Assembly (NCBI RefSeq): GCF_000150275.1
Contig: NW_002060981.1
Location: 62,001-126,000 of the forward strand
Direction: 5' to 3'
Origin: Trichoplax adhaerens
Taxonomy: Eukaryota; Animalia; Placozoa
Length of the DNA stretch: 64,000 nucleotides
This document shows, in pieces, positions 37,794 to 64,000 of the stretch (positions within the stretch are counted from its first letter, which is position 1; each line of letters begins with the position of its first letter). Position numbers and translations under genes: made by a program. The notes beneath the pieces were generated by a model. That model ran no database searches. It saw nothing but the letters and a program-made list of their open reading frames with translations, and was not told where the DNA came from.

Positions 37794-39256
37794 ATGGAGA
37801 AACATGAAGAGGATGCTATTAAGGAATGTTGGTCCGAACTTGTTAAGTCCATGCCGGTAGACCATATGAAAAATAAGCTATTTTCGAAGCGTATATTAGA
37901 GATATCTGATCTTGAAGCTATTGACGCTATGAATACTACTAATAAAAAAAACCAAGAAATTCTAAAATTAGTAACGCGATCACAATCTCCTGAAACCTAT
38001 AATATTTTCATTACTGCTTTGAGGGAAATCCCAACTAGAAATAATATCTTAGCGGACATGGTTGAAAAATGTAATAAAAAGAGCGTATCTTATAACTCAA
38101 GCAGCAATACTGCGTCTGCCAATATAAATGCAGACCAAACAGGTAAGCTTAATCGTAGGTTTAATATTAGTTGTTGGAAAAAATAAAACAATTTCACTAC
38201 GGTATGCGATAAATCCGTTGCTATCTATCAATCTATTACTAATTATATATTTTTAAGGACTAATTGTGATAGCAGAAATCATAAAATCAATTACTGCAAA
38301 TAAAGATAGTATTCGTTAATCAGATAACAAGATTACACCATGTTTGTCTAATGTTTAATATTAATATTGTAAATGATGAAACCAAGTTAGTCATAAATCT
38401 CATAGAATATCAGTAATGATTTCGCTATTACCGCATACTTCAATCTTGATAGCGCTCACTAGTTCGAGCAATCAGATAAAATTTAAACCATATTGATGTT
38501 ACATGATTTTATTTATCGGTTGTTTAACATTGTTTATTTAAACTGATATTACAGACTCTGTTGGAGTTGACAAATCCTCTGCTTGCGGTGAGAAATGGGA
38601 CGTCTTTTTGAGTTATTCGTGGAATAATAAAGACGAAGTAAAGAAAATTAAGAGTTACTTGGAACAGCAAAAGTGGACAGTTTGGATAGATGATGATCGT
38701 GTTGCAGGTGGTCAGAAATTGGATTCAGTTCTTTCAAATGGAATTGAGGCATGCAAGGTAAAATCATGAAGAACGTCGACAACCAGTACTCGCTACTACA
38801 TCGTAGGCTATTTTTCAGCGACAATATTACCTCTGAATAGGCTCTGATTCTGTAACTAATTGCTGATCCAATAAGTTGATGCACAGTTTTAGATCACTAC
38901 TTACTTTTTGCTTTTGATTAACTTCGATCTTTAATTCTGGCTAGGTGTTCGTTCCGTGCTTAAGTAGATCGTATGCTAATTCCGATAACTGTTACAGTGA
39001 ATTGTCACATGCTAAAGACCTCAAAAAGTTTATTATACCAATCGTTCTTGGTGATGTGGATCCTAAAAACGGTGGTCTTAAAGGCAAAAATGGTGACCTA
39101 AATTTTAAAATCACTGGCCTTACGTATATTAAGATAAAAGACTTTGAAGATAAAGCAACGACGAATAAAAAACTAAATGATTTAAATAAGGCAGTACATC
39201 GCCGATTAATAGGATATGATGAAGAAGCATCCAGCGTCAACACGCCATACAAGTAA
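37794..39256 (+). CDS. CARD (death-fold) + TIR (TIR_2/SARM-like) protein, 287 aa
   Basis: Exons 37794-38142, 38555-38757, 38945-39256, GT-AG and phase-consistent. The N-terminus has a CARD-like helical pattern (ELVKSM..KLFSKRIL..LEAI..T.NKKNQEILKLV..TYNIFITAL). TIR: WDVFLSYSW, VWID...GG, GIEACKVFVPCLSRSYANSDNCYSEL, IIPIVL. Confidence 0.9.
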
Positions 39257-44405: not shown

Positions 44406-45242
44406 TTATGCTAAGTTAGTATCCTCCATTTCACTACTTGATGGGCATGGAGAAGTAGTGATAAAGAAGGCTATCTCATATGCGCTGCTAGGCTCTGCAA
44501 ACTTCTCCTTAAATTCGTCTGCAATCCAGGAGACTTGGTATTTAAATTCGACTGTGGTCCTCGGGCTACTGATGGTCAAATTTTTAATTTCTTCTTTTGA
44601 GCATCCTCGAAAGTCACAGGTTTCATAAGTTCTAGTCTCTGGCTTACCAGGTGTAAGTTCTAACTGATTAACCTCTAGGATTGGAGGTGGCACGATCTTG
44701 GTTACAGTTCTTGGACTGCAGTTACTTTTTGTCTGTGCTTCTCTCTTGTGTCGGATGTGCTCTTCTGCAGCGATTTTGGACCGGTGATTTTCTGCAATGA
44801 ATTTATTGTCAGAATCTCCAAGGCTGTTTTTTTGAAGGGGTTGCTGTGATGGCCGACCGCTGGCTATTGGCACTGTAACCATAATAGCAATGGTAACATA
44901 GATGAATAAGAATGCACTGGTTGAAGTTTGGTCAATCTAAATTTTAGGATCAAAATAATATATTTTGTAAAACATTAATAATTAATTAATATAATCAACC
45001 TGTAAATTGAATAAAAGAAAGAGCAATCTTTGACTGTTAATGCAAATAATTTCTGCTTCCAATTACTATTATTTATGCGTCAGAGAGTTACAGCGAACAA
45101 TAACCCTATTTTCGCTAATGAATATGCTGCGTATTAGTTATCTACGAAAATCGATAATTAAATAGGACTAGAGGAAATCTATAGAGTAAACTAGGACATG
45201 GAATAACCTTATACAATTAACTAATAGATTACACCTTACCAT
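44406..45242 (-). CDS. Secreted prepropeptide, divergent cystine-knot-like family, member A (4 Cys)
   Basis: ATG-only exon 45242-45240 (ATG|GTAAG) joins in frame to exon 44936-44406. Signal peptide SAFLFIYVTIAIMVTVPIASG, furin site RHKR, mature region homologous to the 63.6-kb ORF. TATA-like TATAAGTA at about 45338-45345. Confidence 0.8.
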
Positions 45243-48108
45243 CTTCTTAAACGGAAGTTGCTGTAGGATTTTCTAAATCAAGTCCAAATCTTAAAGATCG
45301 AATAGCTTGTGAATAATGAAGTTCAAAGTGAGTGCGGTACTTATAGATTTCAGTAGTGCAAACTAGGGGATATATTTCCATTTTTTGATTAGTTTTTCCC
45401 AATTTTTGTCATACGAATTCTGCCTTCAAGATGTTTAATTACCTTTAGTCAAAGTAATATCAATAATGTAAATATTAAATTTACTATAAAAATGTGTGCG
45501 TGGCAGGAAAAATAAATAAACAATTTCGTTAGCCTGCCTCCATATCATGGATAGGAATTAGTGGTCGGAATTTGACCGTAATACAATTTTGCCTCTCCAC
45601 TACTCTATACTAATCAATTAATTGATAGTATGCAACATAGTAGCCTATGTGGCCGAAATGATTCATAGTTCCAGGGAATTTAAGGTAAGGAATTTCGATA
45701 AATCTAAACTTAATCAAACTGAATATTTGCTACTGATATCAGTCAATGGCTGCTGCGGAAAGGAGCAGCAATAAACGAAGCAACAATAGGTAAACTATAA
45801 CTACTATAGATAATTTAATTTATTTAGTAGGTTAATTCGAAAGTCACATGTAAATGATCCTATTTCTGTACTATTTCCAATTAAATTGACATATCGAAAA
45901 CGAAGACTGTCTTATTTTATATACAAACTAATTTTATCTTGTAGCGTAAAGTTGCAATCAATCATTTTGTATATTATTGAACAATTATGAGATATGCTTT
46001 GACTCTAAGAATATTTTGAGCAATCTACTTAGCAATTAAATTCATCATCTATTTCTAGTAATCAGTTAGAAAACATTCTGTTACTAAATTCTTTCTCGGA
46101 GAGATTGTCGTATATGTGTTAAATATTAAAATGATACAATTAGTGGAAAAACTGTCATGTCGAATTTAAGAAGGCTGACGATATGCTAGTAGTAGAACAG
46201 CACAAGTATTACGTAGTCTTCTATCAACACCATTTTAGAGTTGCAGTATCTGTTTGATCACTAATTGCTATTCGAAAATGGTTGTATGTAAATATATTTA
46301 TCTATTTTTATACGTATACTAATCCTTGTCTACTTTGCGATCAACTAATTCACTTTAACTTGTGAATAATCCAATTAATCATTACTAACCATGACTGCAA
46401 TTTTCTTAATTTGTTAAAAGAAAATATTTACCTATCGTCTTAGTGGTCCACTTTGAAGTTATATGAATTAGCTAATTTTAGAGAATTCATGGCAGTCCTG
46501 TATGATTAACAGAATAAAAAACTTCTATATTTAAGTTTAATATATTTATAGTAGTCATGGGCTATACTGCTGGAATTAAACAACAGTGATGAATGGTGGG
46601 GAAATCAATCGATCGGTGCGGAATTATAATATTTTTGTTTTCCGTCCATATATTGTTTGGACAGGTACCTGCGAACGATGACATCATTGTATAAATTTTC
46701 TCTCTTAAATTTACCAGTTGATTAAATAAATGCCGTAACCTCACTAAATAGTTATTTTTAAAGATTGCAATTAATAAGAATAGGAAATGTAGTCATCCAT
46801 ATGAACTGGCGGAGAATGTTTCATTGCATTTCATAATTCGGCCTTTAACACTTTAATTTCTATTTCGTCCTATTATAGCATTATGGAGATAGCGTAAACA
46901 ATGGATTTATTTTGGGCTAGTTAATGTAAATTTCCGTGCTTGTACTTCTAGGAAAAATCAAATATTAATGGGTTTGATAAAATCCATTACCCCGTCTTTC
47001 CGTAAGGGTATTACATATTAAAATAAGACCTAAATATACATTTATCACTTGGTACTGTTGGACAAGCCAATTTTATGCAATGAAGTAAAATTTTAGAAGA
47101 AATTTTAGTTATTACTAGCCCATTTTGTATTTCACGATAAAAATTAGACAACGAGGTAACTTTAGATCAAGTTTAATTGACACCCTCTTGCATGGCTATA
47201 ACGTTAAAAAGTAATTATGGAACGCAGTACAGGCAATGTAAACGGTATACTGTAGTCACACCTTCTTCGATTGCTTCGAGTATTGCCATTTCTATATAAA
47301 TCTTTACTATTGTGCTGCAAATAGACTTTAAAGGTTTGGATATCGCTTAGTAAGCTATTAGGTCCATTAATGCAGCGTTACAAAATCTTGCTCTATAGCA
47401 TTGCTTTTCAGCACAATAAAAGAGATACTACGATGTGATAGTAAGGCTGCAACTTCGATCATTTTATTCTTTATTCCTTTAAAATTTATTATCGGTGTAT
47501 AGTTTATGTATTGCATTAGGATAATTATTTTCATTACTATTACTCACACTAATATGAAAAGAAAAATCTCCTAAGAGTTAATTTCCTTTCCAAGCTTATT
47601 TGGGTTACAATCATGTCAGTGACTATCACAGTGAATTATAATTTTACTTAGTACGTTAGTATTTTAATTCTGGATTTGATAGTATGTTACTTTGTTATCT
47701 TCATAGTACGAAAGTTCTATTCAAATTACTTGATTGACTAAACTTCGTTTTCCAGGAAATTTATTTTTAAAATAAATTGATATTTATAGTATACATATAT
47801 AGTCTGTAGTTAGAGAAGAAAATCTATTATCTACGTCGATGCTAAAAAGAATATAGCTGCACTACTTTGAATTAGATTAATTTTACTCGTTTTATATACC
47901 GTATACTTTACTTCATTATATATTTATAGCCTATATGCTAATTACCATTTTTATCCCCAAAATTACAAGTGTTTATAGCGTAATAGATCTTTCTCATTAA
48001 ATATCGTTGCTTTCGTCTATAATACCATTGCAAGAACGTCATCAGTTGTTTTCTTTCTGCATATTATATCATTTCCAATTCTTCACACTAGATTACAGTA
48101 AATAAAGA

Positions 48109-51100
48109 TCAATGTATTCCCAGAAGACCCATTGTAAATAATGCTAGACCTATCGATAATAAAGTATATAAAGATAGTCCAGCTGCTCCGTTGACTTCAG
48201 TAGAATCCGTTGTTATTGCTGCAGTATTAGGTCCTTGCGTTGACGTTGCATAAGGCAATGTCGTAATGGAGGCTACATGAAATCAATACCAATCAGGTAA
48301 AAAGTTACTCTAAAGAATTTAGGCAGGGGTTAAAGAATTTTCAATTTATACTACCTAAATAATTCTATCCTGAAATTTAATTATTACATCTCGCAGTGAG
48401 TTAAATTTTATGCTAGAGAAAATTTATAGAATAACTAGAAGTGAGCTTTCCATTTGATAATTTACGTGGCGCATGACTATTGGTCAATTTATATTCTCGT
48501 TCGTGTTTCTAACAGGTAATAGAGATTAAAGTAAAACCTATTTTTAGGTTATTTGTGATTTATCTTCTGATGTTTACATAATTAATCTAGCTATACTTGA
48601 ATGAAACAGAATTTAATTTGTCTGCTAGTTTAGGCTAAAGAAAGACTTTCACCTACGTTAGCTTTTCTAGAAGCTTAGAACTAATAGCAATAACCAATGC
48701 TAATAATTAATAGTCAAATGTCAAACAAGATATGAGAGTGAATATGGCAGAGTTGCTTTTTTAACATATATAATTTTCGATCATGTCATTTACACCGTCT
48801 TTAGTTATACTAAACATTATCGTCTTTTAAAGTCAATTCTGATGTAAGAAATAGCTAATTTGCATAAGTAACACCAATAATATGTATATAATTTAATCTA
48901 AAGGTAAAAGGTGTAACATAAATAGCTATTACAAGGGATTTTAAAATTTTACATTCCGGTATAGAAAAAATTTTTTTTTTTTCTTGACATTTAGTGCTAT
49001 CATCATTTAAAACCTACGACAACATTTTGGATAAAGACTGTTGTTCATTCAAGTATAGTAATAATTTAACGCTAAAAGGTTAATATGTTATAAACCAATG
49101 CGATCATAATTATGGTTATTCTACAGCCATAAAATACAACTAACACTACACTAATACAGCAACTAAAATCAATGGTCGTTGATATTCAAGTACCGTAAAT
49201 TTTTTTAGAATCATTAATCTGTATGCACACTGGTATTCATTAGGAGTATAATAAGATTTGATCTAGGACTTTCAACTCAAGTGAACCGATAAGTTTAAAG
49301 AACGGTCTTAGATTTAAAGATAAGAAATTGATTTACTTTCTCTAGTAACTGAATAATTTCACCTTTTAGCGTCGTTGCTTCGTAAAGCTTCACTAACTTT
49401 CATCAATAGCACATTAAAGCAAGAAAAGTAATTTGGAACTATTCCTTTTTAATCCTATTTTTATACTAGAAATTAGGAAATACTTTCGTGTACTGAAATC
49501 TTGATTGACTTTCTTATTGCAACTCGGTAATAGCATACGGACACCACTTCTAGTCCATAGCTAAGTTTAAAATCATAGCTTTGCGCGTACTCCAGGAGGT
49601 AAGAGTAAACTGATGATTTAATAGGGAATTCTAGTAGTATACGTTATGGATGTTACTATCTAAAGCTTAGAAATAACTTTTAAATACTATTTGGTGATAG
49701 AATTAATTTTTGTACTTAACATACTTGTAAGTAGCTGAATATCGAGCGTTTTTTAAAAATCGATTGCCTTGCTCTGAGTTACTGAGTTGTGATTCCTACG
49801 GTTATAGTTATATTCTATCACAATATTATATTACAATCAGTCTGTAGCCTATTTACCTCTGTGGCATAGATAATTCAGCTTACTATCGCAACTCTCAGTC
49901 AGTAATTGCCAATGAGAGAGGAAAAGCGAGACGCATTTTTGAGCCCCTTTTGCTAATTCAGGTAATCGACTCCATCCTGGACTAGCTAGGTCAAATTTTT
50001 GTCCGTTGATCCATTTATATTCGTAGTACTTTCCAGAGTCGCCTTGTGTGGCTTGCATACCGATCCAAGCTAAGGAACCATAATTTTTATATAGCCGTTG
50101 TACTATTTGGGCCATGCTTGAGTCCAAGAGCAGTAATAATGTTCCATTCTCACTAATACAAGAATTGTTGGCTTCATTCCATTCTAGATGGCTGCCATTA
50201 AATAGCTTAAAGCAATCGTTTCTAAGATTATCTTGGTGCATAAGCCAATTATCAGGGCAAGTATGGATTTGTGAACTAGCTATAAAGTGGCAACGGAGTA
50301 TCATATTAGTTTTTATGCCAGCTGTAAATGAATCATCTTCAGTTGAGACGCTTACAATAAAATAATTAAACAGATTTAAATAAAGAAAATAATTTGCAAA
50401 GATTGATTTTAATGGGCTACAATTTATATTGTCCAGCTATGTAACTGATGAACGCATTTTTATATACATGATGCTAGCTGAGTTTTAAGAGCAGTGAAAC
50501 TTAGAGTTCACAAAATGTTCTGTAGCCAGATTTACTCGCAATTGATATAGTTAACATAATGGAACTAAATTACAACGTGGCAAAAAATTGTAGTGTAGGA
50601 AAGTGTGGTAATAATGTTTATTACAAAATTTATGTCTTAATAATAGTTTTTGTTCGATGTATTATAAACTTCTTCTCTTCAATAATAGTATTTATAGACT
50701 AACTCAGCTCTTATTATTGCACAATAAGACAAAAAATTGTAGAGTAGGAAAAGTGTAGTCGCATTGCACATTTTAATAAATGAAATTCCTTTAAGAGATA
50801 CGAAATAGGATATACGATAATCAATAATGCATACTGATATAGCTATGGCAAGCATAACATTAATTTCTATCAAAATAAAGTTATATTTCTCAGTAGTAAC
50901 CTTTAGAGCTAGCAATACGTTCCACTACTTTACAATGTGATAAATGCTATGATATTTGGTAGAGTCTGATGATGTATTTTATTATGGATATAGTAACGAT
51001 CAAATATAAATAGAACTGATTTATCAGACTTGTTAAAGAGACTATTTATCAAAATAATTTTATTAGAATAAAATTATTTCTGTTAAGTAAGAGTATGCAT

Positions 51101-52708
51101 AGCCGAGATAAGATTCTTCTATTTCGCAATAAAAAGTAATGTATATGTATGAAAAGATTTGATTGGTGTATTATTGTAAATTGAACTATTATAATTCGAG
51201 ATTACTTTAGCAGATTAGAATGTAAAATACCTATTATCTGTAAAAAAGTAGAAGTAACTATGGTGCACCCAAAATAATTTCCTTTATGAATTATTCTTGT
51301 TGAACGGTAATTTATGAACTACTTTCTATGATTTAACTATACTGCACAAAACTTATTTTACAGGGAAAATTTTGACATGATTGCTTTACTACAGGCAGGA
51401 TTATATAGACGGAAATGAACTTAAAATAGGATATAGTGGTATCTACTAGTGCGTGATAAAGTACAATGTCATTGTTATTTAGTAAAAATCTTAATAAGAA
51501 AGGAAGCATGCAGATCTACTTGAGTAATAATCGCATGTCGTTTACATGTTATTCAACACTTAATTAAAGTATTTGAATACTCGGATAAGAAAGTAATTTT
51601 CTAATTTTAGATTTTTTAATATGTAAAACTTGCAACGGATTGAACGCCTTTGATTAGTATAAATAACAAGTAACAGTAATACTATCTACTCTTAATTTAA
51701 ATTACACGCAGTATAGTATAAATGAAACCATTTCCTTTACAATTAACCTAATAGTTAGGCTCCCTATCTGAAATGTAACAGTAATATGATAAATTGCAGT
51801 TGTTTGACGTCAATCATATAAGGATTGGCATAATTATAATCTAGTCTGTAATACAAGAGCAATACTAATTATTAGGGACAATAACGTATGGTAATAGTTT
51901 AAATATCTACCTACAATACTAAAAATCAGAAGTAAGGTATAAATTATTTTTGTAATTTGTTTCTATGTAAATTTTGTAGGATCAAAATATAAAGGTTAAG
52001 GCAAGACCGGCAGATACTAAAAAAGTGTGGAAAAATTAACGCAATCGTCTTCAGCTATAATAGCATTAGTATGTTTTGTAATTTTAACTTTTTATAGTTT
52101 TACTTATTTGAATTTAAACAACTGTGCTTTGGAAAGACAAACCACTGCAATAGAAATCCTAACGCATGTTGAAAATTCAGTAAAACTAAGCACTGTATTA
52201 AAAGAAGTCTACGCCGTATGATATAAACAGGCAGATACGAATATTTCAAATTTTCATTCTACTCAATATATTAATCAAGCTCAAATTATAGCGATTATAA
52301 ATTATAATTCGTTAGTAATGCAGCGAACTATGACATTAATATTAATTGAAGAAAATGGATAGGACGCAATCAATACTCTTTTATATGTTTACCCTATTTT
52401 CTTAATTGAAAAACACAAAACTAAAGTTACGGGAGAATCTATTTTGTACAGCTGTATATCTTACTATACAGCACTTATTTTATATTAGATAATTCAAATG
52501 GTTGCATTATATAGAGTTCTTTCTTGTAGTGTTAAATTGTTTTTCTGATTGAATATTAATTAGAACGATTATTCAATATCATAGTGCCTATATAAATTTA
52601 AAATGGTAAATTCTATGTTTATGTAATAATTATGAATATACTATAGACTGACGATATAATACAGCAATACTCACATAATCTTCCAGCCAATGCCGCCAAA
52701 ATCAAGAG
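48109..52708 (-). CDS. GPI-anchored C-type lectin-like domain protein; start exon unresolved
   Basis: Exons 52708-52675 (LLILAALAGRL, signal peptide core), 50279-49857 (CPDNW..CFKLF..WNEANNSC..AWIGM..YKWING..KCV..CDSKLNYLC), 48272-48109 (S/T-rich stalk, N-G-A omega-like site, hydrophobic tail LSLYTLLSIGLALFTMGLLGIH then stop). Phase-consistent. Confidence 0.85.
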
Positions 52709-55700
52709 CTAGATGAAAAGCAGTCATGGAGAACAATAACATATTGTTAGTAAATAAAGTGGTTCACGTAAATAATTAATACAGTATATTCCATTTTGAT
52801 CAAATTTCGATTAGTAGCAATATAGTTTCGATTATTTTAAAAAAATGCTTATGATTCATATCCAAAATAAAGCAATATAAAATTGTTCATCAAATAAGAC
52901 ATTGATTTAAAAAAAAACTAAAAATGATTTACGCAACAAAGGACGAAGGTCTGCTAATATGGTAGATAACGTGCATTTATATCTCGGGTCAACAGTATTT
53001 AGAATAGTACAATACTATCACGAAATTTTCTTAACAATAATTTCTATCGATGTAGCGTTTGTGGCCTTAGACTTGTTTCTAATTTATGAGCATCAACATA
53101 AGTAAGGGAATAGGACGGATGCAATAAAAAGATGATATCAACTTCATAATCCCAGCTAGCAGTTCTTAATATTATTCATCAACACTGTAGTTACGATAAC
53201 GTATTGTTATTATCTTGATGAAGTGAAATTATATTCTTACAGATGATGTTTTCTCACAAATTCCCATCAGTTTTCTATAGACAATCTATGTATGTTGCGA
53301 TCATTATAAACACTATATTGTCGTACTATATTCCATTACTCTTTATGGATCATTTAAATTTCGCAATCAATTATTATTTTTATGGCGTACAATAGTAATA
53401 CTGTAGAAATTGCTGCATTTCAAATTGAAGATGTAGCCTCTGAAAATAAGCCGATATGATACATTAAAACCGAGATATTAAATGTTAATCTAAAGTACTA
53501 ATATCGTAGGGTATGTCATTTAATAGAGAAATTTCGCTATCGATCTCTGCTTGTATTTTTAACAGAGGAGGGCACTAAGATCGACAAAGTACTCGCGATT
53601 CAAATAATATTAACTGTAAGTAATTTAATATTATAGTATTGGAGACTTATTTGTGGCTACTACCATATGGTAATAATTCTTTCTGCTACTAATTTGTTCG
53701 TGACAGCGATATACCAAAGATTAGCTAAGCTTATAGAAAGAGTTATTGTATTGATGTATTAAATTTAAAGGTATACCTATATTGTATTTTGGCTTAGATG
53801 ATGTAAAAATTAATTTACAACTACCATAAATTGATGAAATGTAATGAGTCGCAATAACCAGCGCGATCAATTCCTATTGTAATTATGATTGATGAAAATA
53901 ATATTGAGATAGCTTCATTCCAGTGATAGAACTACCAATATTGAAAATTTCAATTATTACAAAACATGTAAACACATTGGGATCTCATAACATTCTAAAA
54001 CAGCGTTGCTATTCCATACCAATATAACTGATGTCATTTTATACCTATTTCAATAGACTTTGACTTGTGACTATTCTACGACATTGTGCTATAGCTGGTG
54101 ATAATAAGTTAGATGAATTCAATAGCCCTATAATTAATGGCAGATTTGGTCACTTTGAACTATAAGTCTTATCAAGACTTACTTAAGCTTTTGATACGAT
54201 GTATACGTCAAATGATCAATTTAAAATATTTTCTTGTAAGTATTGATTAAATCGTGAAGTAGACATTCAAATAGATAGGGAAGAAAGAGATATAATACTA
54301 AAAGATAGAAGAAGTTCAATATCCGAAAGTTGTGCTTCAGATTTTGTTTGAATATACTGGAATCAGTATAGTGCAGATTGTGTGCTGTGGCTAAGAATAA
54401 CTGTCTGTCTAAAAGAAATATCGACATGTAATCTTAACTCTCATAAACAATAGAAGTTAGAATACAATTATTTTTCTCATAAATTTACTTTCGCCTTAGC
54501 CGCGCCATTTTATTTTAAGGATTTTCAGAAGTTGATTAATCGTATAGACTTATAATTATGGATGTGATCGAATCAAAAATTTTTCATTAACTTTATCTCA
54601 TAACCATGTGTTAAGATTGTACTACGTCCCGTATGAAATATAGATATCTCGCAGTATAGGTTAAAATTTTCAAAACTGAATACATAAAATATAGTATCTA
54701 AGATAAATATATAATTATCATGCTATGGTAGTGTGCTATTGAGAGCAAAGGAAGTATTTAGATTACGCATATACTAAGAATGTTAATCTAATCATATTTG
54801 AGATTTGATACAGGGACAATTGATTAATTACCGCCAATGAGCGAAACGGATCTGTCACAACGAGAACTACTCAGTAACACGAAATATTCATCATAACACC
54901 AAGCAATAAAATATTTAAATGACTTTAAGGTATATGTTAATGCGTCCTCCTTAGCATATTTATGCGTAGTTTCTTTTAAAAGAATATGCTAATTTGATTG
55001 AAGATTATTTATAATCTATAAATTCAACGTAAGCTTCAATATTTAATACGGTAACGCACAATTTTACTCTTATTGACTTAGAGTTTAATTCAAAAAGCTA
55101 TTGCGAAATAGAATCCATCTAAGACAGTATCCACATCACATACATGTCATAAAAAATAGAAAAAAACATTAAGCCTAAGGCAATATACTTCGAACTAAAT
55201 AGCGGCTCTAGTGCATTATACGGATAAGTGATGTTTTATTATTTTTAGGTGGAAGAAGGAATTAAAGTCAGTTTTCTAGTCCAAATTAGATGATTTTTTT
55301 AATGGTTACTATGATATATGTTGTATTGTGAAATATATTCTGTTGCAATCGTAGCTACAGAGTCAATTTCGTTTTGGATTACAGTTCAATCAACGCTATA
55401 AAATTAATTACTAGTATTTGAAAAATACTATCAAAATACGGGCTAATATAGCATAGTCTTCGAATATAGTGTATTATATATATAATTTGGAGGTAGTTTG
55501 AATTATTTTCTGGTAGAATATCAGTTTCTACTATCGTTTTTATTCTCCGTGATAGCATTTTAAATTCTTTTAGTTATAGTTTATGAATTTTAGAATACAA
55601 TTGTTTGCTATCACGAATCAGATACTACCATGTTTTGATAGTGACGCAAGTAATAAGATGAAAATGTAAATATTCATAATATTAACATTTCCCTGGGATA

Positions 55701-58700
55701 TATACTGTATTCATTGTACAGTCTACAATAATTACTATCGAATCAAAACACGTTTATTATCTATATGATACTGTAGTAAGAAAATTAAAATAATTTCTTA
55801 AAGGGTATACTCGATTTTAAACATATCTTGCCGCCCTACAGAACAAACAACATCGATAAATTGATCTAGTTAGAGTAATGGATATCTATTTTAACGTTTG
55901 TTTATAAATCTCAGTGCCATTTTAAAAACCATCTTCTCATTATAACGATTGCATTTGGCAGTAATTTAGATTAATATCGTGTTGAACTACACTATTCTAG
56001 CAATAGATCAAGTTATTAGCAAATCGGTGGATATTAAATATCATTCCCTTCAAGCACAAATTTGAAAACAAATCCAGACACTTTGTAAAAAACGTGCTTA
56101 CCAACAACAATGATTTTAGGATCATGGCTTTTACGTTGTATTTTTACGATTGTGAGAAATGATGCGGGCCCAGTAAATGGAGACTTAAATATAGTAGGGA
56201 ACAACCTAAGGTATATCATCCGAAAGTTACGCCTACTATTGAACTATAGAATGTCCACTATTAGTTTTATATTGAATTGAAAACAATAGTTTGTCCTATT
56301 TTATCATTAGAATGCAAAATTAATATTGCTGTCTCATCATGGGGGTACTCTGCAGTCTACACTATAGAGTGGACAGTCATTAGGATTGCATCATGTAATC
56401 ATATTACTAATGTATCAAGCTTAAATAGCTATTTTTAATAGTTCAAACTAGTTTAAATTTGAAAACAGTATCAACAATCGTAGAATATAGAATATTTCTT
56501 AAATATTTTATAGGAAGGATTATTGACAGGCTATGCATATTCTAAGCTACAATGGAATGCAACGTGCATGGAATAATGGATTAAAATAACATTGAATAAA
56601 TAGGAAAGACTAGACAATATTTCTCAGTTGGAGTAATTAGCTATCAAGACCTTTTACCTTTCTTTTACATACTACACTATTTTACCATACATATAGTGTT
56701 GGCTGCAGTAAAAAATTTTGCTTTAAACACAGCCAACAGAGCTAGGAATATGAGAGTACATAATCTGGAAACTTATAGTGACGTGAACAAACTTTCATCA
56801 AGACAGCCTATGATGTTGCAATTTTCAAGAGTACTTGATATATAAACTTATACCGATTTGTAGAAACCTTTTATTTTTTGACGCATCATGCTCCAGTAGA
56901 GTCTATGTATAGGATAATTTCATTTTCTTATCCTCACATTTGGATTACAAAGCGTTTAAATTTCTTTATATTGCATTATTAAACTTAATGGTGGATGTTA
57001 CAGCTATAGACGGATTCTAATGTTTCACCAGCCTTAAATGGACGAAAAATAACAATAGTATGTCCATAATTTTGAATGGGATGGCTGGCTAATCAATAAC
57101 GCAACGAGCATTATAATTCTTACGGCAATTTTAAGTGTCCACCAAGAATTTCTATTCAAATAGTCTAGCTTTTTTGTTTCCGTGCTACTATGATCATAGA
57201 AATGTGCGTCAATTGCTAGATCTTTTTTCCAATATTAAACCGACATTAAACAATAACGGGTTACTACCTTAGCACTATGGCTGCCGCTATCATTATTATT
57301 CTACATTGTTAACTGGCATACCCGCTAATGTACCTTCTCCATTACTACTTGACCTTGTCATCATCATTACAATTAGTACCTCTTAATCAAAGTCGGCTTT
57401 TCGAACTTATTGTGCTATCTCTTATTATCTTACTAGTAAATGGAAGTGTTTTAATTTTTCGCGATTACTTACCTTATTATCGTTCTTAGTCAATACTATC
57501 TCAAATTTGATATATAATTTGTATTGTGGCTGGCTAGTATTCTACTACTTTATAGTCTCTTTTGCTTTACTTCTTTAATTAATCGTCGTTTTTTAAACCG
57601 CTCGCCTTTTGTTCGGCTAGTAGGTTATTGATTTTTTTTTTAGACTGCTGATCTATGCACTTGGATGTTTGAAGAATGGACTAAAGATACTTGTAAAGCT
57701 GACCTAGATTAGAGATATCTACAGAGTAACAGTTTGCTCTTGCACGAGAATTATTTCCAAAGCAGTTCATGTATAACGAATGATATAAATCACACAAGAT
57801 CAATAAATGATTTACTGAGTTACCTATGCAAGCAAAGAAACAATAAAGGTCGATCTTTAATTTAATAGCGACCGAATAATTTCTATTTGAAGATTTTTGT
57901 CAACAGTAGCACCAACGTATTTTACAAATCTTTCATTAGAGTTACCGATAGGCGTGGAAGGTAAAGCAATCAAGACGACTACCCTACACAAACCACTATC
58001 CAATGAAATGTATGCATACAATAGCAACTATGCAACTATAATGAATAAGTTCACGCATTCCATCGTAATTGATTTAATTACGATTATCAGTTCGTAGAGG
58101 GTGAGGAATACTTTGGTGAACAGTTTGATCTAATGCAACTAGATTGGACGAATAATCATATTGAGAGGGTATGAGTCATGCTTTTCCGCAATAAAAAGCC
58201 AATGAACTACTGACAAGGTCGAGATGCTCTGTTCTAGTTAGATTCCTGGCAAAGGATAGAAATTCTACCCGTCAGATGATTACCATTGATAAATTAATTT
58301 AGTATTACTCACCCTTCATTCTTGACATAGCTGAATAATGAGGTAAATAACTAGCCATCATACCGAATGGTACCGGCAGTTATTAACTCTATTTGAATAA
58401 GAATGCAACAGTTTCTGGCATTATTATAAAGTTTACCATGAAATACATGGATATCAACATGAATTTAGTACTATGGTTATGCCTACCCTCACTTATACAG
58501 TACATAACTTAGAATGGAAACGGGATATCTTCGTTCTTGACGGGCTTGGATGTCATTCCGGCTTACTGAAATGCTTTTAATTAAAAAGCATTGTCGTCCT
58601 TTTCTAGAGATTTATACATGGTTGAATAAATTATCGGTAGCACTTTGACCAATATACGTATTTATGAGGTAATTTTTTATCTCCAAGAAATTTGCTATTA

Positions 58701-60156
58701 ATTATTAAATAAGAGATGGTCAATGCAGTGGCTACTACATGCAAACGCCTGTTAGGAATCATCTGAAGAGTAAGAGTGAAAAATTTCAGAATAGTTATCG
58801 CGAGGATTTCGTATTTTCGATGTTGTATCAATAGATAAATTTTACCGCCACCATATCTTGTAATTTCATGGAATACTCTGAGACAAAAAATAGCAAGGGA
58901 CGATAAACAATCTAGTTCCACTCATAAAAACTTAACAGGAATTAAATTTAAATATTCTGATAGCCAATACTTCGGAAAAGTAGACTGTTCCATATCATTT
59001 ATTTTCAATTTTAGTATATTAAAAATGTCAGTAGTGGGAACTAGAGTCGTACTTCTGTGAAAAGTCATTATTGATTGTAAGCTCAGGATGAAACTGGAGA
59101 GCGGGAAAGTGGGCGTTTATGTTTAAACTCTTTACTGTCGAGTAAATGCAGATATAAAACGTTGGATATTATAGAATCAACCACTTTTAATATACTGTAC
59201 AATACAAAGGGATGCAATAGGCTAGGGTATAGATCTTGCTTATGATAGAGTTCAACACATTCAGAGTTTTTCTCTATAATTTTTCGTCATAATGGCGACA
59301 GTACACTGTATTTAGTTAGGGAGAAAAATTGAGAAATTAATCACTTCTATAGGCAGTGGAGTGCTTAATCATTGCACATACAGTAAGTGTTCAACTTGAT
59401 AATGCATAGTTATGATATTCTAATTGCATTACAAAGTATACGAACCGGAGATTATTATCTGTCCCAGAATTTCTGCAGTTGGTAATCGGTGTAGATCAAT
59501 TGTTAGGCACAGGTTTGAGATTATTCTGAAGAAAGACCCATGCTACATGCTAAATTATTTCTTAATCTGTAAAGCAAAAGTGCACCACGGTTACAAACAC
59601 TAATTGTACACCGGATAGAAATACGGCGGCGGAAATCAGGCCCATTAAGTAAGATTTAAGACTTTAATATGTACTAGAGCAATTGCAAGTGCTATCCAAA
59701 CACTGATTGATCTATTTATCAAGCGAAAGAGCTAGAAAAAAAATTGCAAAGGTACAGGACATCAAAGGTAGAAGTAACCATCATTTATTTCGGGATAGAC
59801 TCTACTGAACAGAATTGGAACGCTAACTTAATGATGAGCTACGATCGGTAAACTGTACAGGGTATGATTCGGTAAGGATGATCGTAGAAATATCTTCCTT
59901 TCTACAAATGTAACACTAAACCCCTATTTCCTACGCATGTAGTAATTAATTTCTTCTTTTTCGTCGCATAGAACAGTATACCATAGATGAGAATTACGGT
60001 GGTTCTATTTGGGTAGATGTTTTAATTTGATGATGTAGGCAAGCCGTAACGTCTAAAAATTTTTATTTATTGTCTGTATCTTACTATCACATAAAATTTA
60101 TTTTTCATGAATAATTTTCTTCTTCATCAAAGTGTATAATAAGTAAACATGAGAGT

Positions 60157-60300
60157 TTACGGAGCAGCGGTTGTGTCCACCTGCTAATAATTACCATCAT
60201 CTTTACGGGCCATCGCTAGCTGTAGTAGATAATTGTTATGGGACTTCATATTCCATTCTATTTTTACTTATCGGCTTCATGTAGAGACGACCGTATTTTG
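60157..60300 (-). pseudogene. Possible decayed fragment of the cystine-knot-like family
   Basis: AATAGAAT-GGAATATGAAGTCCCA resembles AATAGAATTTGAATATAATGCACCA of the 63.6-kb gene. It ends AACCGCTGCTCCGTAA versus AACTGTTCATGCCCGTAA. Frameshifts and stops present. Confidence 0.3.
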
Positions 60301-60391
60301 CAACAATCTTAGACAAAAATTATTTCAATGTTGATCTTATAAATAATTAATCAATCCAAATCATTTGGTAGCTGAAAAAGAAAACCAACAC

Positions 60392-60497
60392 GATATATTC
60401 CTTGTCCTCAAGACATTATTAAAGAAAACAATTTTAAATATAGTAACATACTTGCATGATATATTCCTTGGTCCAAGACATTATTAAGAAAACAATT
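60392..60497. repeat. ~40-bp direct duplication
   Basis: GATATATTCCTTG..CAAGACATTATTAA.GAAAACAATT at 60392 and 60458. Confidence 0.85.
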
Positions 60498-63400
60498 ATT
60501 AGCATCTCTTTAGCTTGCATTACTAGAGTAACTGTTTTCTTGGAAATTCAAAGTGTAAGGCATCGAGCATAGTTATAAAATGGATAATCGCAGTTGGTAG
60601 TAAGACTAGACCATAAACAAATGGAGAAATAAGCTTTGTGTTGAATAATATAATTTGATCAGCAATAGTATATAAAGATTTTAATAGTAGCAGTAGTTGT
60701 GCATCTATGCGTAGATAACATAATTTTTTTCAATGACAATAATCGATAGTTAGATAGCTAAGTTTATTTATATAATTTACACACAAAAACATCAACATAA
60801 TTAAAAATACAGTATTTGCTGATATCTGTATGTTTTAATTACCGTACTGTAGATATTTCAAGCACTTGCACGAGTAGATTTTAATTCAGTGTCAGATATG
60901 ATGACTCCTAAGATTTGTTGTTCGCCATTGATTTTAATACGTAATAAAATTTTGCTATAGTGGAAAAACTGGGCAATCGGTGTATTGTGAGATGGTGTCA
61001 CTAGCGAAGGATCTCAGTTACTTTCCAGTTTATTGGATTAAGGTGCACCTATTAAATTTTAATTTTAATAGCATAGGTCACGGTTCGAGCTGATTGATCG
61101 ATTGAGTTAGTTAAATTTTTCCAGTTCCATCTCTGCACCAAGGAACTTTAATTTAAAGTATGAGTTCCAAATCTTTAAGAAATCTAAACAAATGTTAGGC
61201 TCTTACTTATATAAAGTTATAAAAGTACATTCGTATCAAGTAAATCGCATATGAATTTCCGTATTTTGAAATGCGGGTAGGGTTACTGCGACGCTACACT
61301 CTTCGAAGTCTCTTGTCATTATACAATCAATGGTTTATGTATAAATTTCCAACTCATAAATTTTTGCCGGATTTTCAAGTAATAGAGTGACATGCGATGA
61401 TATTTCTTTGTCTCCGTAAAGATGAAGACAGTTATAGAATACCAGTATATCATTTGACAATGATCTTAGCCCGTTATATGTATAGCTGACAAAACTATTA
61501 AGAAATATAAACCCTTCAGTCATTTAAGTCTTACATTATGGATGTTATTTCTGTTTCCTATATTGATAACGACGTTAAGCTCACGAGAGACTGTTGTTAT
61601 CTTCAATTAGGATTATTATAATGCCATATACTGTATAATACAGTATTTGCTGTAATAGACGGTGCATATTTTTAGATTAATATAACATAAATTTGCTGCA
61701 TATGGTCAGGATAAATAAGTAATTGGCAGAATTCTTACGACAGTTCTCTCTCTTCAGTAGCTATCACATAAATGCAAACGAAATTTACATTTTCTGAGCA
61801 CCTAGTAATAAAATTATGATGCAGCCCTAATGATTTAATACTACCTTTTTCATTAATAAGTGAAACACTGTAAACACTTTACTGCTACTACGATAACAAT
61901 TCAAGTTTTACGTCATTTAAGGTGGTCTTTGATCTTTGACGGTCCATACTTAATAGTATAGCGAAAGATCCTATTAATCACCAGCTGCCGGTACTGCTCA
62001 CTAGCACTTTATCCAGCATAATCTTCTATGTACAAGTATATTCAAATCTCATTAGGTTATAATTTCGCAAATAACTAAGTAATAAGCATTGACAAAAATG
62101 AAAAGTAGCAACAGTTAAGGTTGCTTTTCACTTTAAGAGAGTTTTAAATTTATCGCGAGCGGCGATTATGAACTGTGAGGCATATTGAATAATTACTACA
62201 CGTATATTCAATGGCGCTATCGTTATTACCATTTCTTGCATCCCTTACTTAGATCACACATTTTAGATTCCGTTTTCTGCCGATACTTAACTAGGAAAGC
62301 AATCGGTTGCTATAATACTAGGATGCTGATCACATATTTTGCACTCCCGGCATCTTATGAAATATGAAGTTCTCATCTAAGGTAATCTTAATCTTAATCC
62401 ATGGGAAAAATTATCCAATCCGTAATTCCTACTGTATATTTTGAGTCCAATTTTGACCTTCATAGGTTTGTTAATTACCGCTTACTGTTATGTTTATTTT
62501 GTTGCTTTTGACAGTATTTTATTTTATGTTAGATACAAAATCGTAAAAATAAGTCACTTGTAATATTTTTTTCCTTTTCGGTCTTACATTCATAGTACCG
62601 GGTATAGGAAAAGGATATTAAACTTTCTAAATTGGATAAGCCGCACACATGCAATCAGCTAGAATTGTTCTGTTCTATTTGAATTATTGAAAGCTATTCA
62701 TTAATTATAAAGACCTAGTATACCATTACTAAATGGTAGATCATCTTATTAAGTCAAGAATGATGCTATACCTCATTTTGTAATACTAGTGTTAAATAAC
62801 TGTTTATTTTGTATCTTTAGTTTATAATATCCGCAGTATAGGAATTTCATGATAAAACTTTCGCTAATTAATTAGTGTTATATGAGAATCAGTAAATATC
62901 AATGAGAAGAGACACACAGAATTTACTTATTCAATTGTCCATTTATTTAATTCGAAATACAATTACACGTACGCACTTCAATGGTTACACCACTGACCAC
63001 TGAGTCAGTCATCGAAATGGCAGGAGTTACAGTTGTCACATCAATTCTGCATAGAGTTCTATCATTAAAATTAATTAAAGTGTGTATGAAATACAATAAG
63101 AGCCTACAAGGCTGTACGTTATGGAGATTTCAGTCGCACAATACCAATATGAGTGCTGCTTGAATAATTAAGTAATTTTCAATACACCTATATTCCTCAT
63201 AGTTTCGCTGAAAGTGGTTATCATAGTAGCGATACCTGCATTATTTATTCGCTATACACGTATATAAACATATATAATTATATAAGAAGTGTTTTTTCCT
63301 GTAATACTTTCAATTTATACAGTATATCACTACAAGTAGAATGCATTTGACCTGCATATAATTTAGGTCAAAATTGCTGCTAACATTGTGCAAGATAAAG

Positions 63401-63556
63401 GCTACAGATATAATTTTCCACGTATTATTCTACTTTTAGCTACTATATTTCCGGTATTGTCAGCATAACTTCTTTTTTACAAGTTGTGACTATTACTGTA
63501 CGATATAAGTGAAAGTAATTTAAGATTATAGTATCAATTTGAGTATTTTTAGCATA

Positions 63557-64000
63557 TTACGGGCATGAACAGTTATCTGGAACGAGTATGGATAATGTTA
63601 CTTTTTTGTCCGTTGACGGCCAGGTACTCTCTGGTGCATTATATTCAAATTCTATTCGCTTTTTTTTATTCGAGCTTTCACACGCTTTAATTTCTTTTGG
63701 CGAACAGGCTTTGTAACTACACTTTGCATATAAATGTCCAAGTGGGCGGCCGTACCCGTAACTGGCTGATATCCATGGAGCCGGGAAGAATTTTCGTTCT
63801 TGCTCGACATGGCAAGGTGGATCGAATTCATTAATTTTTGGTGATCTTTTAACAAAGGCTGATCTATCGTTGGACTCTTTCGTGTTATTACCTTCATTCA
63901 AATCGGACGAATTAAATTTATTCTCCTTGGCTACTGCTTTTGAATAGTCAGCCGGCCACGCACTACCGTATGGTAGAACGACTAAAATAATCACAATAAA
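63557..64000 (-). CDS. Secreted prepropeptide, divergent cystine-knot-like family, member B (6 Cys); 5' end truncated
   Basis: The frame is open to the window edge (FIVIILVVLPYGSA signal peptide). Polar pro-region, KR site, mature domain C...WI...C-x4-C...C...C-x-C at the extreme C-terminus. Confidence 0.85.
   Translation of the reverse strand, partial: FIVIILVVLPYGSAWPADYSKAVAKENKFNSSDLNEGNNTKESNDRSAFVKRSPKINEFDPPCHVEQERKFFPAPWISASYGYGRPLGHLYAKCSYKACSPKEIKACESSNKKKRIEFEYNAPESTWPSTDKKVTLSILVPDNCSCP

Follow-up and report, generated by a model that had tools for sequence, protein, structure and literature searches.

Two minus-strand genes, here called A and B, lie about 19 kb apart in a 64,000-nucleotide stretch of the Trichoplax adhaerens genome (contig NW_002060981.1, positions 62,001 to 126,000; the whole stretch is hereafter the window, and coordinates are those of the window unless another locus is named), and they are read here as encoding divergent, ancestral-type IL-17-like cytokines, an affiliation to which we give a probability of roughly 0.45. 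Their products are predicted to be secreted pre-pro-proteins in which a signal peptide and a pro-region precede a conserved basic site, the presumed point of cleavage, and a mature domain modelled as a two-finger cystine knot whose ring has the spacing of IL-17. The family adds a new and strongly diverged case to a known kind of cytokine. It is conceivable, although we hold this tentatively, that A and B are bona fide placozoan IL-17 ligands and the missing partners of an orphan SEFIR receptor and a Death-SEFIR adaptor encoded in the same genome.

The window has a low GC content (about 31%) and carries few genes. Both open reading frames given in a preliminary description of this DNA, A at 44406-44882 (-) and B at 63557-63994 (-), were confirmed, and the 11 identities over an ungapped core of 30 residues that it had counted were reproduced by a recount on their translations. 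A is 22% identical to B and pairwise BLASTP aligns the two with E=2e-07, while a family profile of nine sequences recovers their loci with E-values of 6e-50 and 1e-53; because of these values A and B are, judged by sequence, true paralogs whose similarity reflects homology rather than chance. In the genome searched (105.6 Mb, 1414 contigs) the family has four members with profile E-values from 3e-54 to 6e-50, the other two, C and D, forming a tandem pair 5.5 kb apart on scaffold C1414. The signal peptide ascribed earlier to both genes proved real, but the N-terminal start falls outside the listed open reading frames. Upstream of the listed ATG of A the frame remains open through a hydrophobic stretch to an acceptor at 44937/44936, exon 2 begins at 44936, and the start codon lies at 45242-45240 in the context AAG-ATG; the 177-residue gene model P0009, which consists of M plus the translation of 44936-44409, agrees exactly with this structure. 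Exon 2 of gene B starts at the window-equivalent position 64036, 36 nucleotides past the window end, and is separated by an intron from a coding exon 1 consisting of the ATG only (window-equivalent 64320-64322, outside the window). A phase-0 intron directly after the ATG is thus seen in A, B and D (gene model P0008 for D) and, being common to the three, is a shared derived mark of the family. The features of the two genes are as follows.

44406-45242, minus strand: gene A as a whole, from an upstream exon made up of the ATG only to the stop codon
45240-45242 (-): coding exon 1 of gene A, limited to the ATG, with a GTAAGG donor next to it at 45239 (read from the sequence)
44937-45239 (-): intron of gene A, 303 nucleotides, phase 0, directly after the start codon, 3' end ...tttag (read from the sequence)
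44856-44936 (-): signal peptide of gene A (preceded by the upstream Met), IDQTSTSAFLFIYVTIAIMVTVPIASG, predicted cleavage between ASG and RP (translation)
44742-44855 (-): pro-region of gene A, 38 residues, with the furin-type site R-H-K-R at its C-terminus (translation, family alignment)
44409-44741 (-): mature domain of gene A, a predicted cystine knot of 111 residues with four Cys (translation, AlphaFold model)
44406-44408 (-): stop codon TAA of gene A (read from the sequence)
63557 to beyond the window end, minus strand: gene B as a whole, the open reading frame plus an extension read past the window
63959-64000 (-): in-window end of the signal peptide of gene B, ...FIVIILVVLPYGSA, predicted cleavage between GSA and WP (translation)
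63845-63958 (-): pro-region of gene B, 38 residues, ending in the dibasic V-K-R (FVKR) (translation)
63560-63844 (-): mature domain of gene B, a predicted cystine knot of 95 residues with six Cys (translation, AlphaFold model)
63557-63559 (-): stop codon TAA of gene B (read from the sequence)

The processing features hold across the family, whose alignment comprises ten members (an earlier profile was built from four sequences). The basic sites that had been noted, RHKR in A and FVKR in B, are present, and a dibasic [KR][KR] site occupies one alignment column in nine of the ten members, 8-11 residues before Cys I, reading RHKR in A, where it has the R-x-K-R form, VKR in B, KK in C and D and KR in four further relatives. 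The pro-region measures 38 residues in A, B and D and 39 in C. Signal peptides of the family carry small residues at -3/-1; that of gene A has a hydrophobic core in addition, and its junction, A or G followed by RP, is kept in the A-type relatives.

Two cysteine patterns were found. Mature B has the six Cys ending in C-x-C that were described for it, at residues 11, 42, 47, 55, 92 and 94 (C-x30-C-x4-C-x7-C-x36-C-x-C), and shares this six-Cys B type with C, D and P0003, whereas the A type (A, P0004, P0005, P0006/P0010 and P0012) keeps Cys I, the C-x4-C pair and one Cys of the terminal pair, which of the two being ambiguous from the alignment. The A type has lost Cys IV together with one of the two terminal Cys. 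All ten members have the C-x4-C pair and those of the B type also C-x-C, the gap from Cys III to Cys V amounts to 44 residues in B, C and D, and nine of the ten members have a Gly before Cys III and, likewise nine of ten, a Pro 8 residues before Cys II; A-K-C, ending in Cys II itself, is seen in B alone. The C-x-G-x-C of TGF-beta, glycoprotein hormone, DAN and PDGF knots occurs in none of the ten aligned members.

Proteins of the cystine-knot superfamily have two fingers, b1-b2 and b3-b4, and bonds Cys II-V and III-VI, with I-IV passing through the ring; in the placozoan proteins the pairing would be the same as far as it can be inferred from the Cys positions. AlphaFold models of mature B (predicted local distance difference test score, pLDDT, 80.8, from only four sequences) and mature A (pLDDT 74.6, from ten sequences) both run strand-strand-short helix-strand-strand (b1-b2-helix-b3-b4) and, together with the structural matches, bear out the two-finger fold that the preliminary description had proposed. 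In a structural search of B against 48,161 chains the first 30 rows are all cystine-knot cytokines. Foldseek against the PDB gave no match at E up to 0.001 and a weak list made up mostly of knot cytokines, and after re-alignment of that list the best solved match of B is PTTH (5aoq_L, Z 5.5, root-mean-square deviation 4.1, 75 residues, 19% identity), followed by IL-17A (7uwn_B, Z 5.0, root-mean-square deviation 3.2, 70 residues, 17% identity); a second PTTH chain, 5aoq_M, reaches Z 4.9 with 21% identity over 75 residues, and sclerostin, PRDC, Gremlin, norrin and BMP-6 come next at Z 4.6-4.9. Of the 13 best solved matches of A, 11 are cystine-knot growth factors, and these take ranks 1 to 11, with Z at most 4.2. 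Low and tied as they are, these Z-scores establish the fold class and nothing finer. A homodimer co-fold of mature B scored 0.00, the fold itself being uncertain in that engine, and gives no verdict.

Within this fold class, a knot other than that of IL-17 has to be considered, either a ligand of an orphan LGR (glycoprotein hormone-, bursicon- or norrin-like) or a BMP/Wnt antagonist of DAN/sclerostin type. Gremlin, NBL1, PRDC, sclerostin, norrin and the Caenorhabditis elegans alpha2/beta5 hormone are tied with IL-17A for B (Z 4.3-4.9), DAN-type and hormone knots together with PDGF and VEGF head the list for A (PDGF, Gremlin and VEGF-C at Z of about 4), by shape, DAN-family clusters come first in the ESM-Atlas, with template modelling (TM) scores of 0.57-0.58, and of the 46 LGRs of Trichoplax 41 belong to none of the three canonical types (PMC9545775), many orphan LGRs being possible receptors. 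Nevertheless, we regard such an assignment as quite unlikely, since the 8-membered C-x-G-x-C ring and the extra cysteines of the LGR-ligand and DAN families are absent here, those families normally lack a cleaved pro-region, separate bursicon/glycoprotein hormone-like peptides have already been reported for placozoans (PMC4079206), and the language-model neighbours of the family belong to IL17, NGF, Spaetzle and Noggin rather than to DAN or Cys_knot.

The ring points elsewhere. The preliminary description had taken C-x4-C without Gly for a novel, enlarged ring, but the comparison then made covered only C-x-G-x-C families (TGF-beta, glycoprotein hormones, DAN), and the claim has to be abandoned: a ring of C-x4-C, 44 residues and C-x-C is the ring of IL-17 and ordinary in this branch of the superfamily. 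NGF and PTTH rings are larger still than that of IL-17. In human IL-17A the ring cysteines are, by the numbering we assume, Cys94/99 and Cys144/146, which gives the same spacing as in B; residues 12-95 of the model align structurally to IL-17A 71-147, and these ranges fit an ungapped match over the ring stretch, consistent with the assumed numbering. Likewise, in the ESM-Atlas the nearest named cluster carries Pfam IL17, for B and separately for A, and the next clusters carry IL17, NGF, Spaetzle or Noggin and none TGF-beta, DAN or PDGF, the neighbour scores of 0.84-0.87 being leads only. A neighbour among cnidarian clusters labelled "hypothetical" scores 0.91. The named neighbours, the PTTH and IL-17A top matches of B and the IL-17-like ring together favour the IL-17 / Trunk-PTTH / neurotrophin branch over the C-x-G-x-C branch, to which TGF-beta, glycoprotein hormones and DAN belong. 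Invertebrate IL-17s retain the third disulfide and with it all six Cys (Huang, 2015, PMC4517768; Chen, 2024, PMC11087794, type T1A), and for this reason the six Cys of B, which are the ancestral IL-17 state, are no argument against IL-17. Furthermore, the conserved Pro before Cys II fits the IL-17 motif P-x-x-[IL]-x-E-A-[RK]-C (Huang, 2015, PMC4517768).

A signalling pathway into which such ligands could fit is present in the genome, where SEFIR was found at two places. The first belongs to a gene that resembles CIKS/Act1 and codes for a Death domain at the N-terminus (1.9e-08) and for SEFIR at the C-terminus (2.6e-07), an architecture treated as ancestral for this IL-17 adaptor (Chen, 2024, PMC11087794). 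The other SEFIR copy is preceded, 1.6 kb upstream, by an exon that codes for a classic transmembrane helix and a basic stop-transfer sequence, and the upstream exons of its putative ectodomain (L016 2280-3188), scanned exon by exon, matched no Pfam family, which makes the presumed ligand-binding part as hard to assign as the ligands themselves.

L015 5498-6037 (-), 7547-7981 (-) and 9170-9553 (+), on G000:C1414 near 6.76 Mb: the Death+SEFIR adaptor gene and, on the opposite strand, a Death-like open reading frame
L016 4325-4501 (+), 6087-6281 (+) and 6345-6767 (+), on G000:C1390 near 206 kb: the transmembrane-plus-SEFIR receptor candidate

Both placozoan SEFIR genes have been described before, with a similarity of the SEFIR region to IL-17 receptors found by HHpred, no ligand, and a function that "remains difficult to deduce" (Kamm, 2019, PMC6321704). 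Toll-like receptors are reported absent from Placozoa (PMC6321704), as are Trunk, PTTH and Torso (De Oliveira, 2019, PMC6660194), which removes the obvious partners of the rival readings. Past the adaptor gene, at a distance of 1.2 kb and on the other strand, is a second open reading frame that by eye resembles a Death domain.

Several results weigh against an IL-17 affiliation. The Pfam IL17 model (PF06083) matched none of the ten members at E up to 10, although the HMMER filters may hide weak matches, and a six-frame genome search with it was empty, a weak negative as the controls were empty too. Family profiles of four and nine sequences run against PDB sequences retrieved no solved IL-17, and an HMMER profile search of 1.84 billion cluster representatives retrieved none at E up to 0.001. 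The structural Z of about 5 is low, IL-17A being tied with PTTH, Gremlin, NBL1, sclerostin and BMPs for B and coming only 12th, at Z 2.8, for A. On the side of the receptor, an ectodomain of the IL-17R type with FN3 domains was not detectable by six-frame genome search or exon scans, the empty controls again making this a weak negative; "degenerated" IL-17R ectodomains are common (Chen, 2024, PMC11087794). UniRef names paralog D (B3RKC2, TRIADDRAFT_52791) "Spaetzle domain-containing protein", a label that the Pfam Spaetzle scans did not reproduce. A pro-region (here of 38 residues) that ends in a dibasic site characterizes NGF, PTTH, Trunk and CFSH rather than vertebrate IL-17. Finally, Cys IV follows Cys III by 8 positions, inside the predicted short helix and 5 residues earlier than in IL-17. 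We take the IL-17 position to be 13 after Cys III (the Ser/Cys in LN[SC]VP) and that of PTTH to be 6, which places the Cys III-IV spacing of the family nearer to PTTH than to IL-17.

This spacing is one of several points that would fit Trunk/PTTH-type neurotrophic hormones, whose receptor would be a tyrosine kinase, like Torso in the case of Trunk and PTTH, or another non-SEFIR receptor. PTTH is the single best structural match of B (Z 5.5 for 5aoq_L and 4.9 for 5aoq_M), even if 5.5 for PTTH against 5.0 for IL-17A amounts to a tie; the pro-region and its dibasic cleavage site are Trunk/PTTH-like, and Cys IV comes soon after Cys III as it presumably does in PTTH. The ring differs, with x4 here and, as we assume, x7 in PTTH, and the HMMER search of the 1.84 billion representatives revealed no Trunk or PTTH relatives. 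Trunk-like peptides have been traced to cnidarians and a ctenophore, yet no Trunk, PTTH or Torso was found in Placozoa (De Oliveira, 2019, PMC6660194), and on balance this assignment appears unlikely. The two readings overlap, however, since Chen (2024, PMC11087794) derives IL-17 from a Trunk-like neurotrophin and places PTTH and CFSH close to IL-17; the intermediate-looking placozoan family is compatible with such a Trunk-to-IL-17 origin, without a firm placement.

The automatic name of D would rather suggest Spaetzle/NGF-type neurotrophin ligands that act on receptors of leucine-rich repeat (LRR) type or on p75/Trk-like ones. The pro-protein architecture fits this, and NGF and Spaetzle clusters are among the nearest named ESM-Atlas neighbours. 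Neither Pfam Spaetzle (PF16077) nor Pfam NGF (PF00243) matched any member, and six-frame genome searches with both, as with IL17R_fnIII_D1 and IL17R_fnIII_D2, were empty, the controls being empty too, so that these are weak negatives. NGF reached only Z 3.4 against B in the wide structural search, Spaetzle is not among the best 50 matches listed in either search and appears in Foldseek only as a weak match (7b1c_D, E 2.1, TM 0.29), and the ring of x4 contrasts with what we believe to be x9 in NGF. Bipartite receptors combining LRR with TIR or SEFIR have been proposed for placozoans (Kamm, 2019, PMC6321704), but taken together we consider a Spaetzle/NGF ligand very unlikely.

With regard to sequence-based classification, the earlier statement that no known family can be assigned holds, as no profile search (Pfam, PDB profiles, six-frame genome) places the proteins in a curated family. 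Pfam Cys_knot, DAN, TGF_beta and PDGF matched none of the members, and a single-sequence PDB search produced nothing relevant. FAF1 (E 0.12 in the PDB sequence search) is a low-complexity match, and Pfam APOBEC-like, KNOX1, Memo and other matches are noise at chance level. APOBEC/AID-like matches on the C-terminal tail of gene A (window 44406-44480 (-), residues 122-149, E about 0.1), which lie around its S-P-C-P motif, are also taken as chance because the model puts the fourth knot strand there.

The description of A and B as a lineage-specific ligand family stands in part: a family of secreted pro-protein type is found by sequence in placozoan-like genomes only, but its ring is not unprecedented. 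The profile search of the 1.84 billion representatives yielded seven matches at E up to 0.001, namely A and D themselves, four relatives from sequencing runs or metagenomes and one spurious repeat protein, and so far the family would thus seem confined to placozoan-like genomes. Proteins identical to those of T. adhaerens are present in Trichoplax sp. H2 according to cluster look-ups, and the relatives in other assemblies have the same Cys and motif pattern. A word-index protein search is insensitive for this family, B alone retrieving nothing, not even its own paralogs, and the family profile three A-type relatives only; a DNA search of L020 and L006 against the T. adhaerens genome gave no match. 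The spurious matches P0007/P0011, from a 48-kb ENA contig, are rejected as unrelated: they consist of tandem repeats of about 52 residues, each unit with F-F-Y-V-S-C-S-Y-G-G-C-S-K-K, they share only the word C-S-Y-G-G-C-S with the family despite a family-profile E of 7.5e-05, and they probably arose when a gene caller translated unrelated repeat DNA.

The A-type and B-type clades are supported at 100/99, and because each contains sequences from more than one organism or assembly, the split between them is old and the four-Cys form not a decaying copy. Adjoining P0003 is a C-type lectin exon orthologous to the lectin gene next upstream of B (72-76% DNA identity), and the assembly that bears it probably represents another placozoan lineage. 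B and this positional counterpart are 33% identical over 91 residues, against about 72% for the adjacent lectin, and the ligand thus diverges far faster than the neighbouring lectin. Such divergence, the adjoining secreted lectin genes and the still putative receptor of A and B might also suit a fast-evolving secreted knot protein that does not signal and has an effector role (antimicrobial, adhesive or in digestive mucus). Set against this are the conserved convertase-type processing, the knot geometry and the two old subfamilies, all of them typical of cytokines and hormones, and the rapid change that IL-17 ligands themselves typically undergo (PMC11087794), which leaves an effector highly improbable.

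The lectin association is recurrent. A C-type lectin gene lies upstream of each ligand gene on the same strand: that of A, at 49849-50304 (-), is 5 kb away (Lectin_C 1.5e-12), that of B, a paralog that includes a TSP1 exon, is 2.3 kb away (L017 2670-3170 (-) and 2332-2643 (-)), and that of P0003, an ortholog in the placozoan-like assembly, is 2 kb away (L005 2457-3122 (+)). This looks like a duplicated two-gene cassette of lectin plus ligand. In addition, a CARD exon at 37794-38183 (+) (2.6e-09) and a TIR exon at 38945-39253 (+) (1.7e-04) lie 5 kb from A and are probably one of the MyD88-like CARD-TIR genes described before (Kamm, 2019, PMC6321704). With its CARD-TIR and lectin neighbours the region has a touch of innate immunity, although this counts as weak evidence.

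For A and B as IL-17-like cytokines, we infer a course of events in which every functional step is drawn from sequence features and fold. Each protein would be synthesized as a pre-pro-protein, lose its signal peptide and be cut at the conserved dibasic site by an enzyme of furin or prohormone-convertase type, releasing a two-finger knot domain of 95-111 residues that probably dimerises. The released ligand would bind the placozoan single-pass SEFIR-domain receptor, which in turn would signal through the Death+SEFIR adaptor resembling CIKS/Act1. In this way A and B may be the missing ligands of a placozoan pathway of IL-17-receptor type, and a four-gene ligand family with IL-17 ring geometry offers concrete candidates for the ligand of the SEFIR pathway.

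If this is true, the common ancestor of placozoans, cnidarians and bilaterians would have possessed a full IL-17 axis of ligand, receptor and adaptor, already with a six-Cys knot and a cleaved pro-domain, and the axis would operate in an animal without neurons or dedicated immune cells, Trichoplax having about nine cell types and lacking a nervous system. In the four-Cys A type the knot would then be rebuilt in one more, undescribed way, Cys I having to pair with an orphaned ring Cys. The family bears on the question of whether IL-17 was an immune cytokine from the start or began as an epithelial or peptidergic signal, and also on the proposed transition from Trunk to IL-17. Should the proteins be Trunk- or Spaetzle-like instead, a neurotrophin-type ligand would be added to a phylum for which none has been described.

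Compared with known systems, Spaetzle and NGF resemble the placozoan proteins in being pro-proteins cleaved to a C-terminal knot domain with a larger-than-8 ring and a terminal C-x-C, but the ring spacing differs and Toll receptors are absent from placozoans (PMC6321704). PTTH and Trunk share the six knot Cys ending in C-x-C and a pre-pro-hormone with a dibasic site, whereas the placozoan family has no interchain Cys. From IL-17 the family departs in having no Pfam IL17 match, in the distance from Cys I to Cys II, which is 31 positions here and about 22 in IL-17 and a misfit to an IL-17 affiliation, and in its A type, which lacks Cys IV and one of Cys V/VI, a pattern outside the five types of Chen (2024, PMC11087794). 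Placozoans lie outside the sampling of that study, the most complete one of IL-17 origins, and Trichoplax was recorded as negative for IL-17 in another (Huang, 2015, PMC4517768). With the T1A IL-17s of invertebrates (PMC11087794; PMC4517768), on the other hand, the family has in common a secreted two-finger knot with six Cys, a ring of C-x4-C and C-x-C with 44 residues between Cys III and Cys V, a Gly before Cys III and a Pro 8 residues before Cys II, a small multigene family of tandem or clustered genes with very fast divergence, and a genome that also encodes SEFIR receptor-like and Death+SEFIR adaptor genes.

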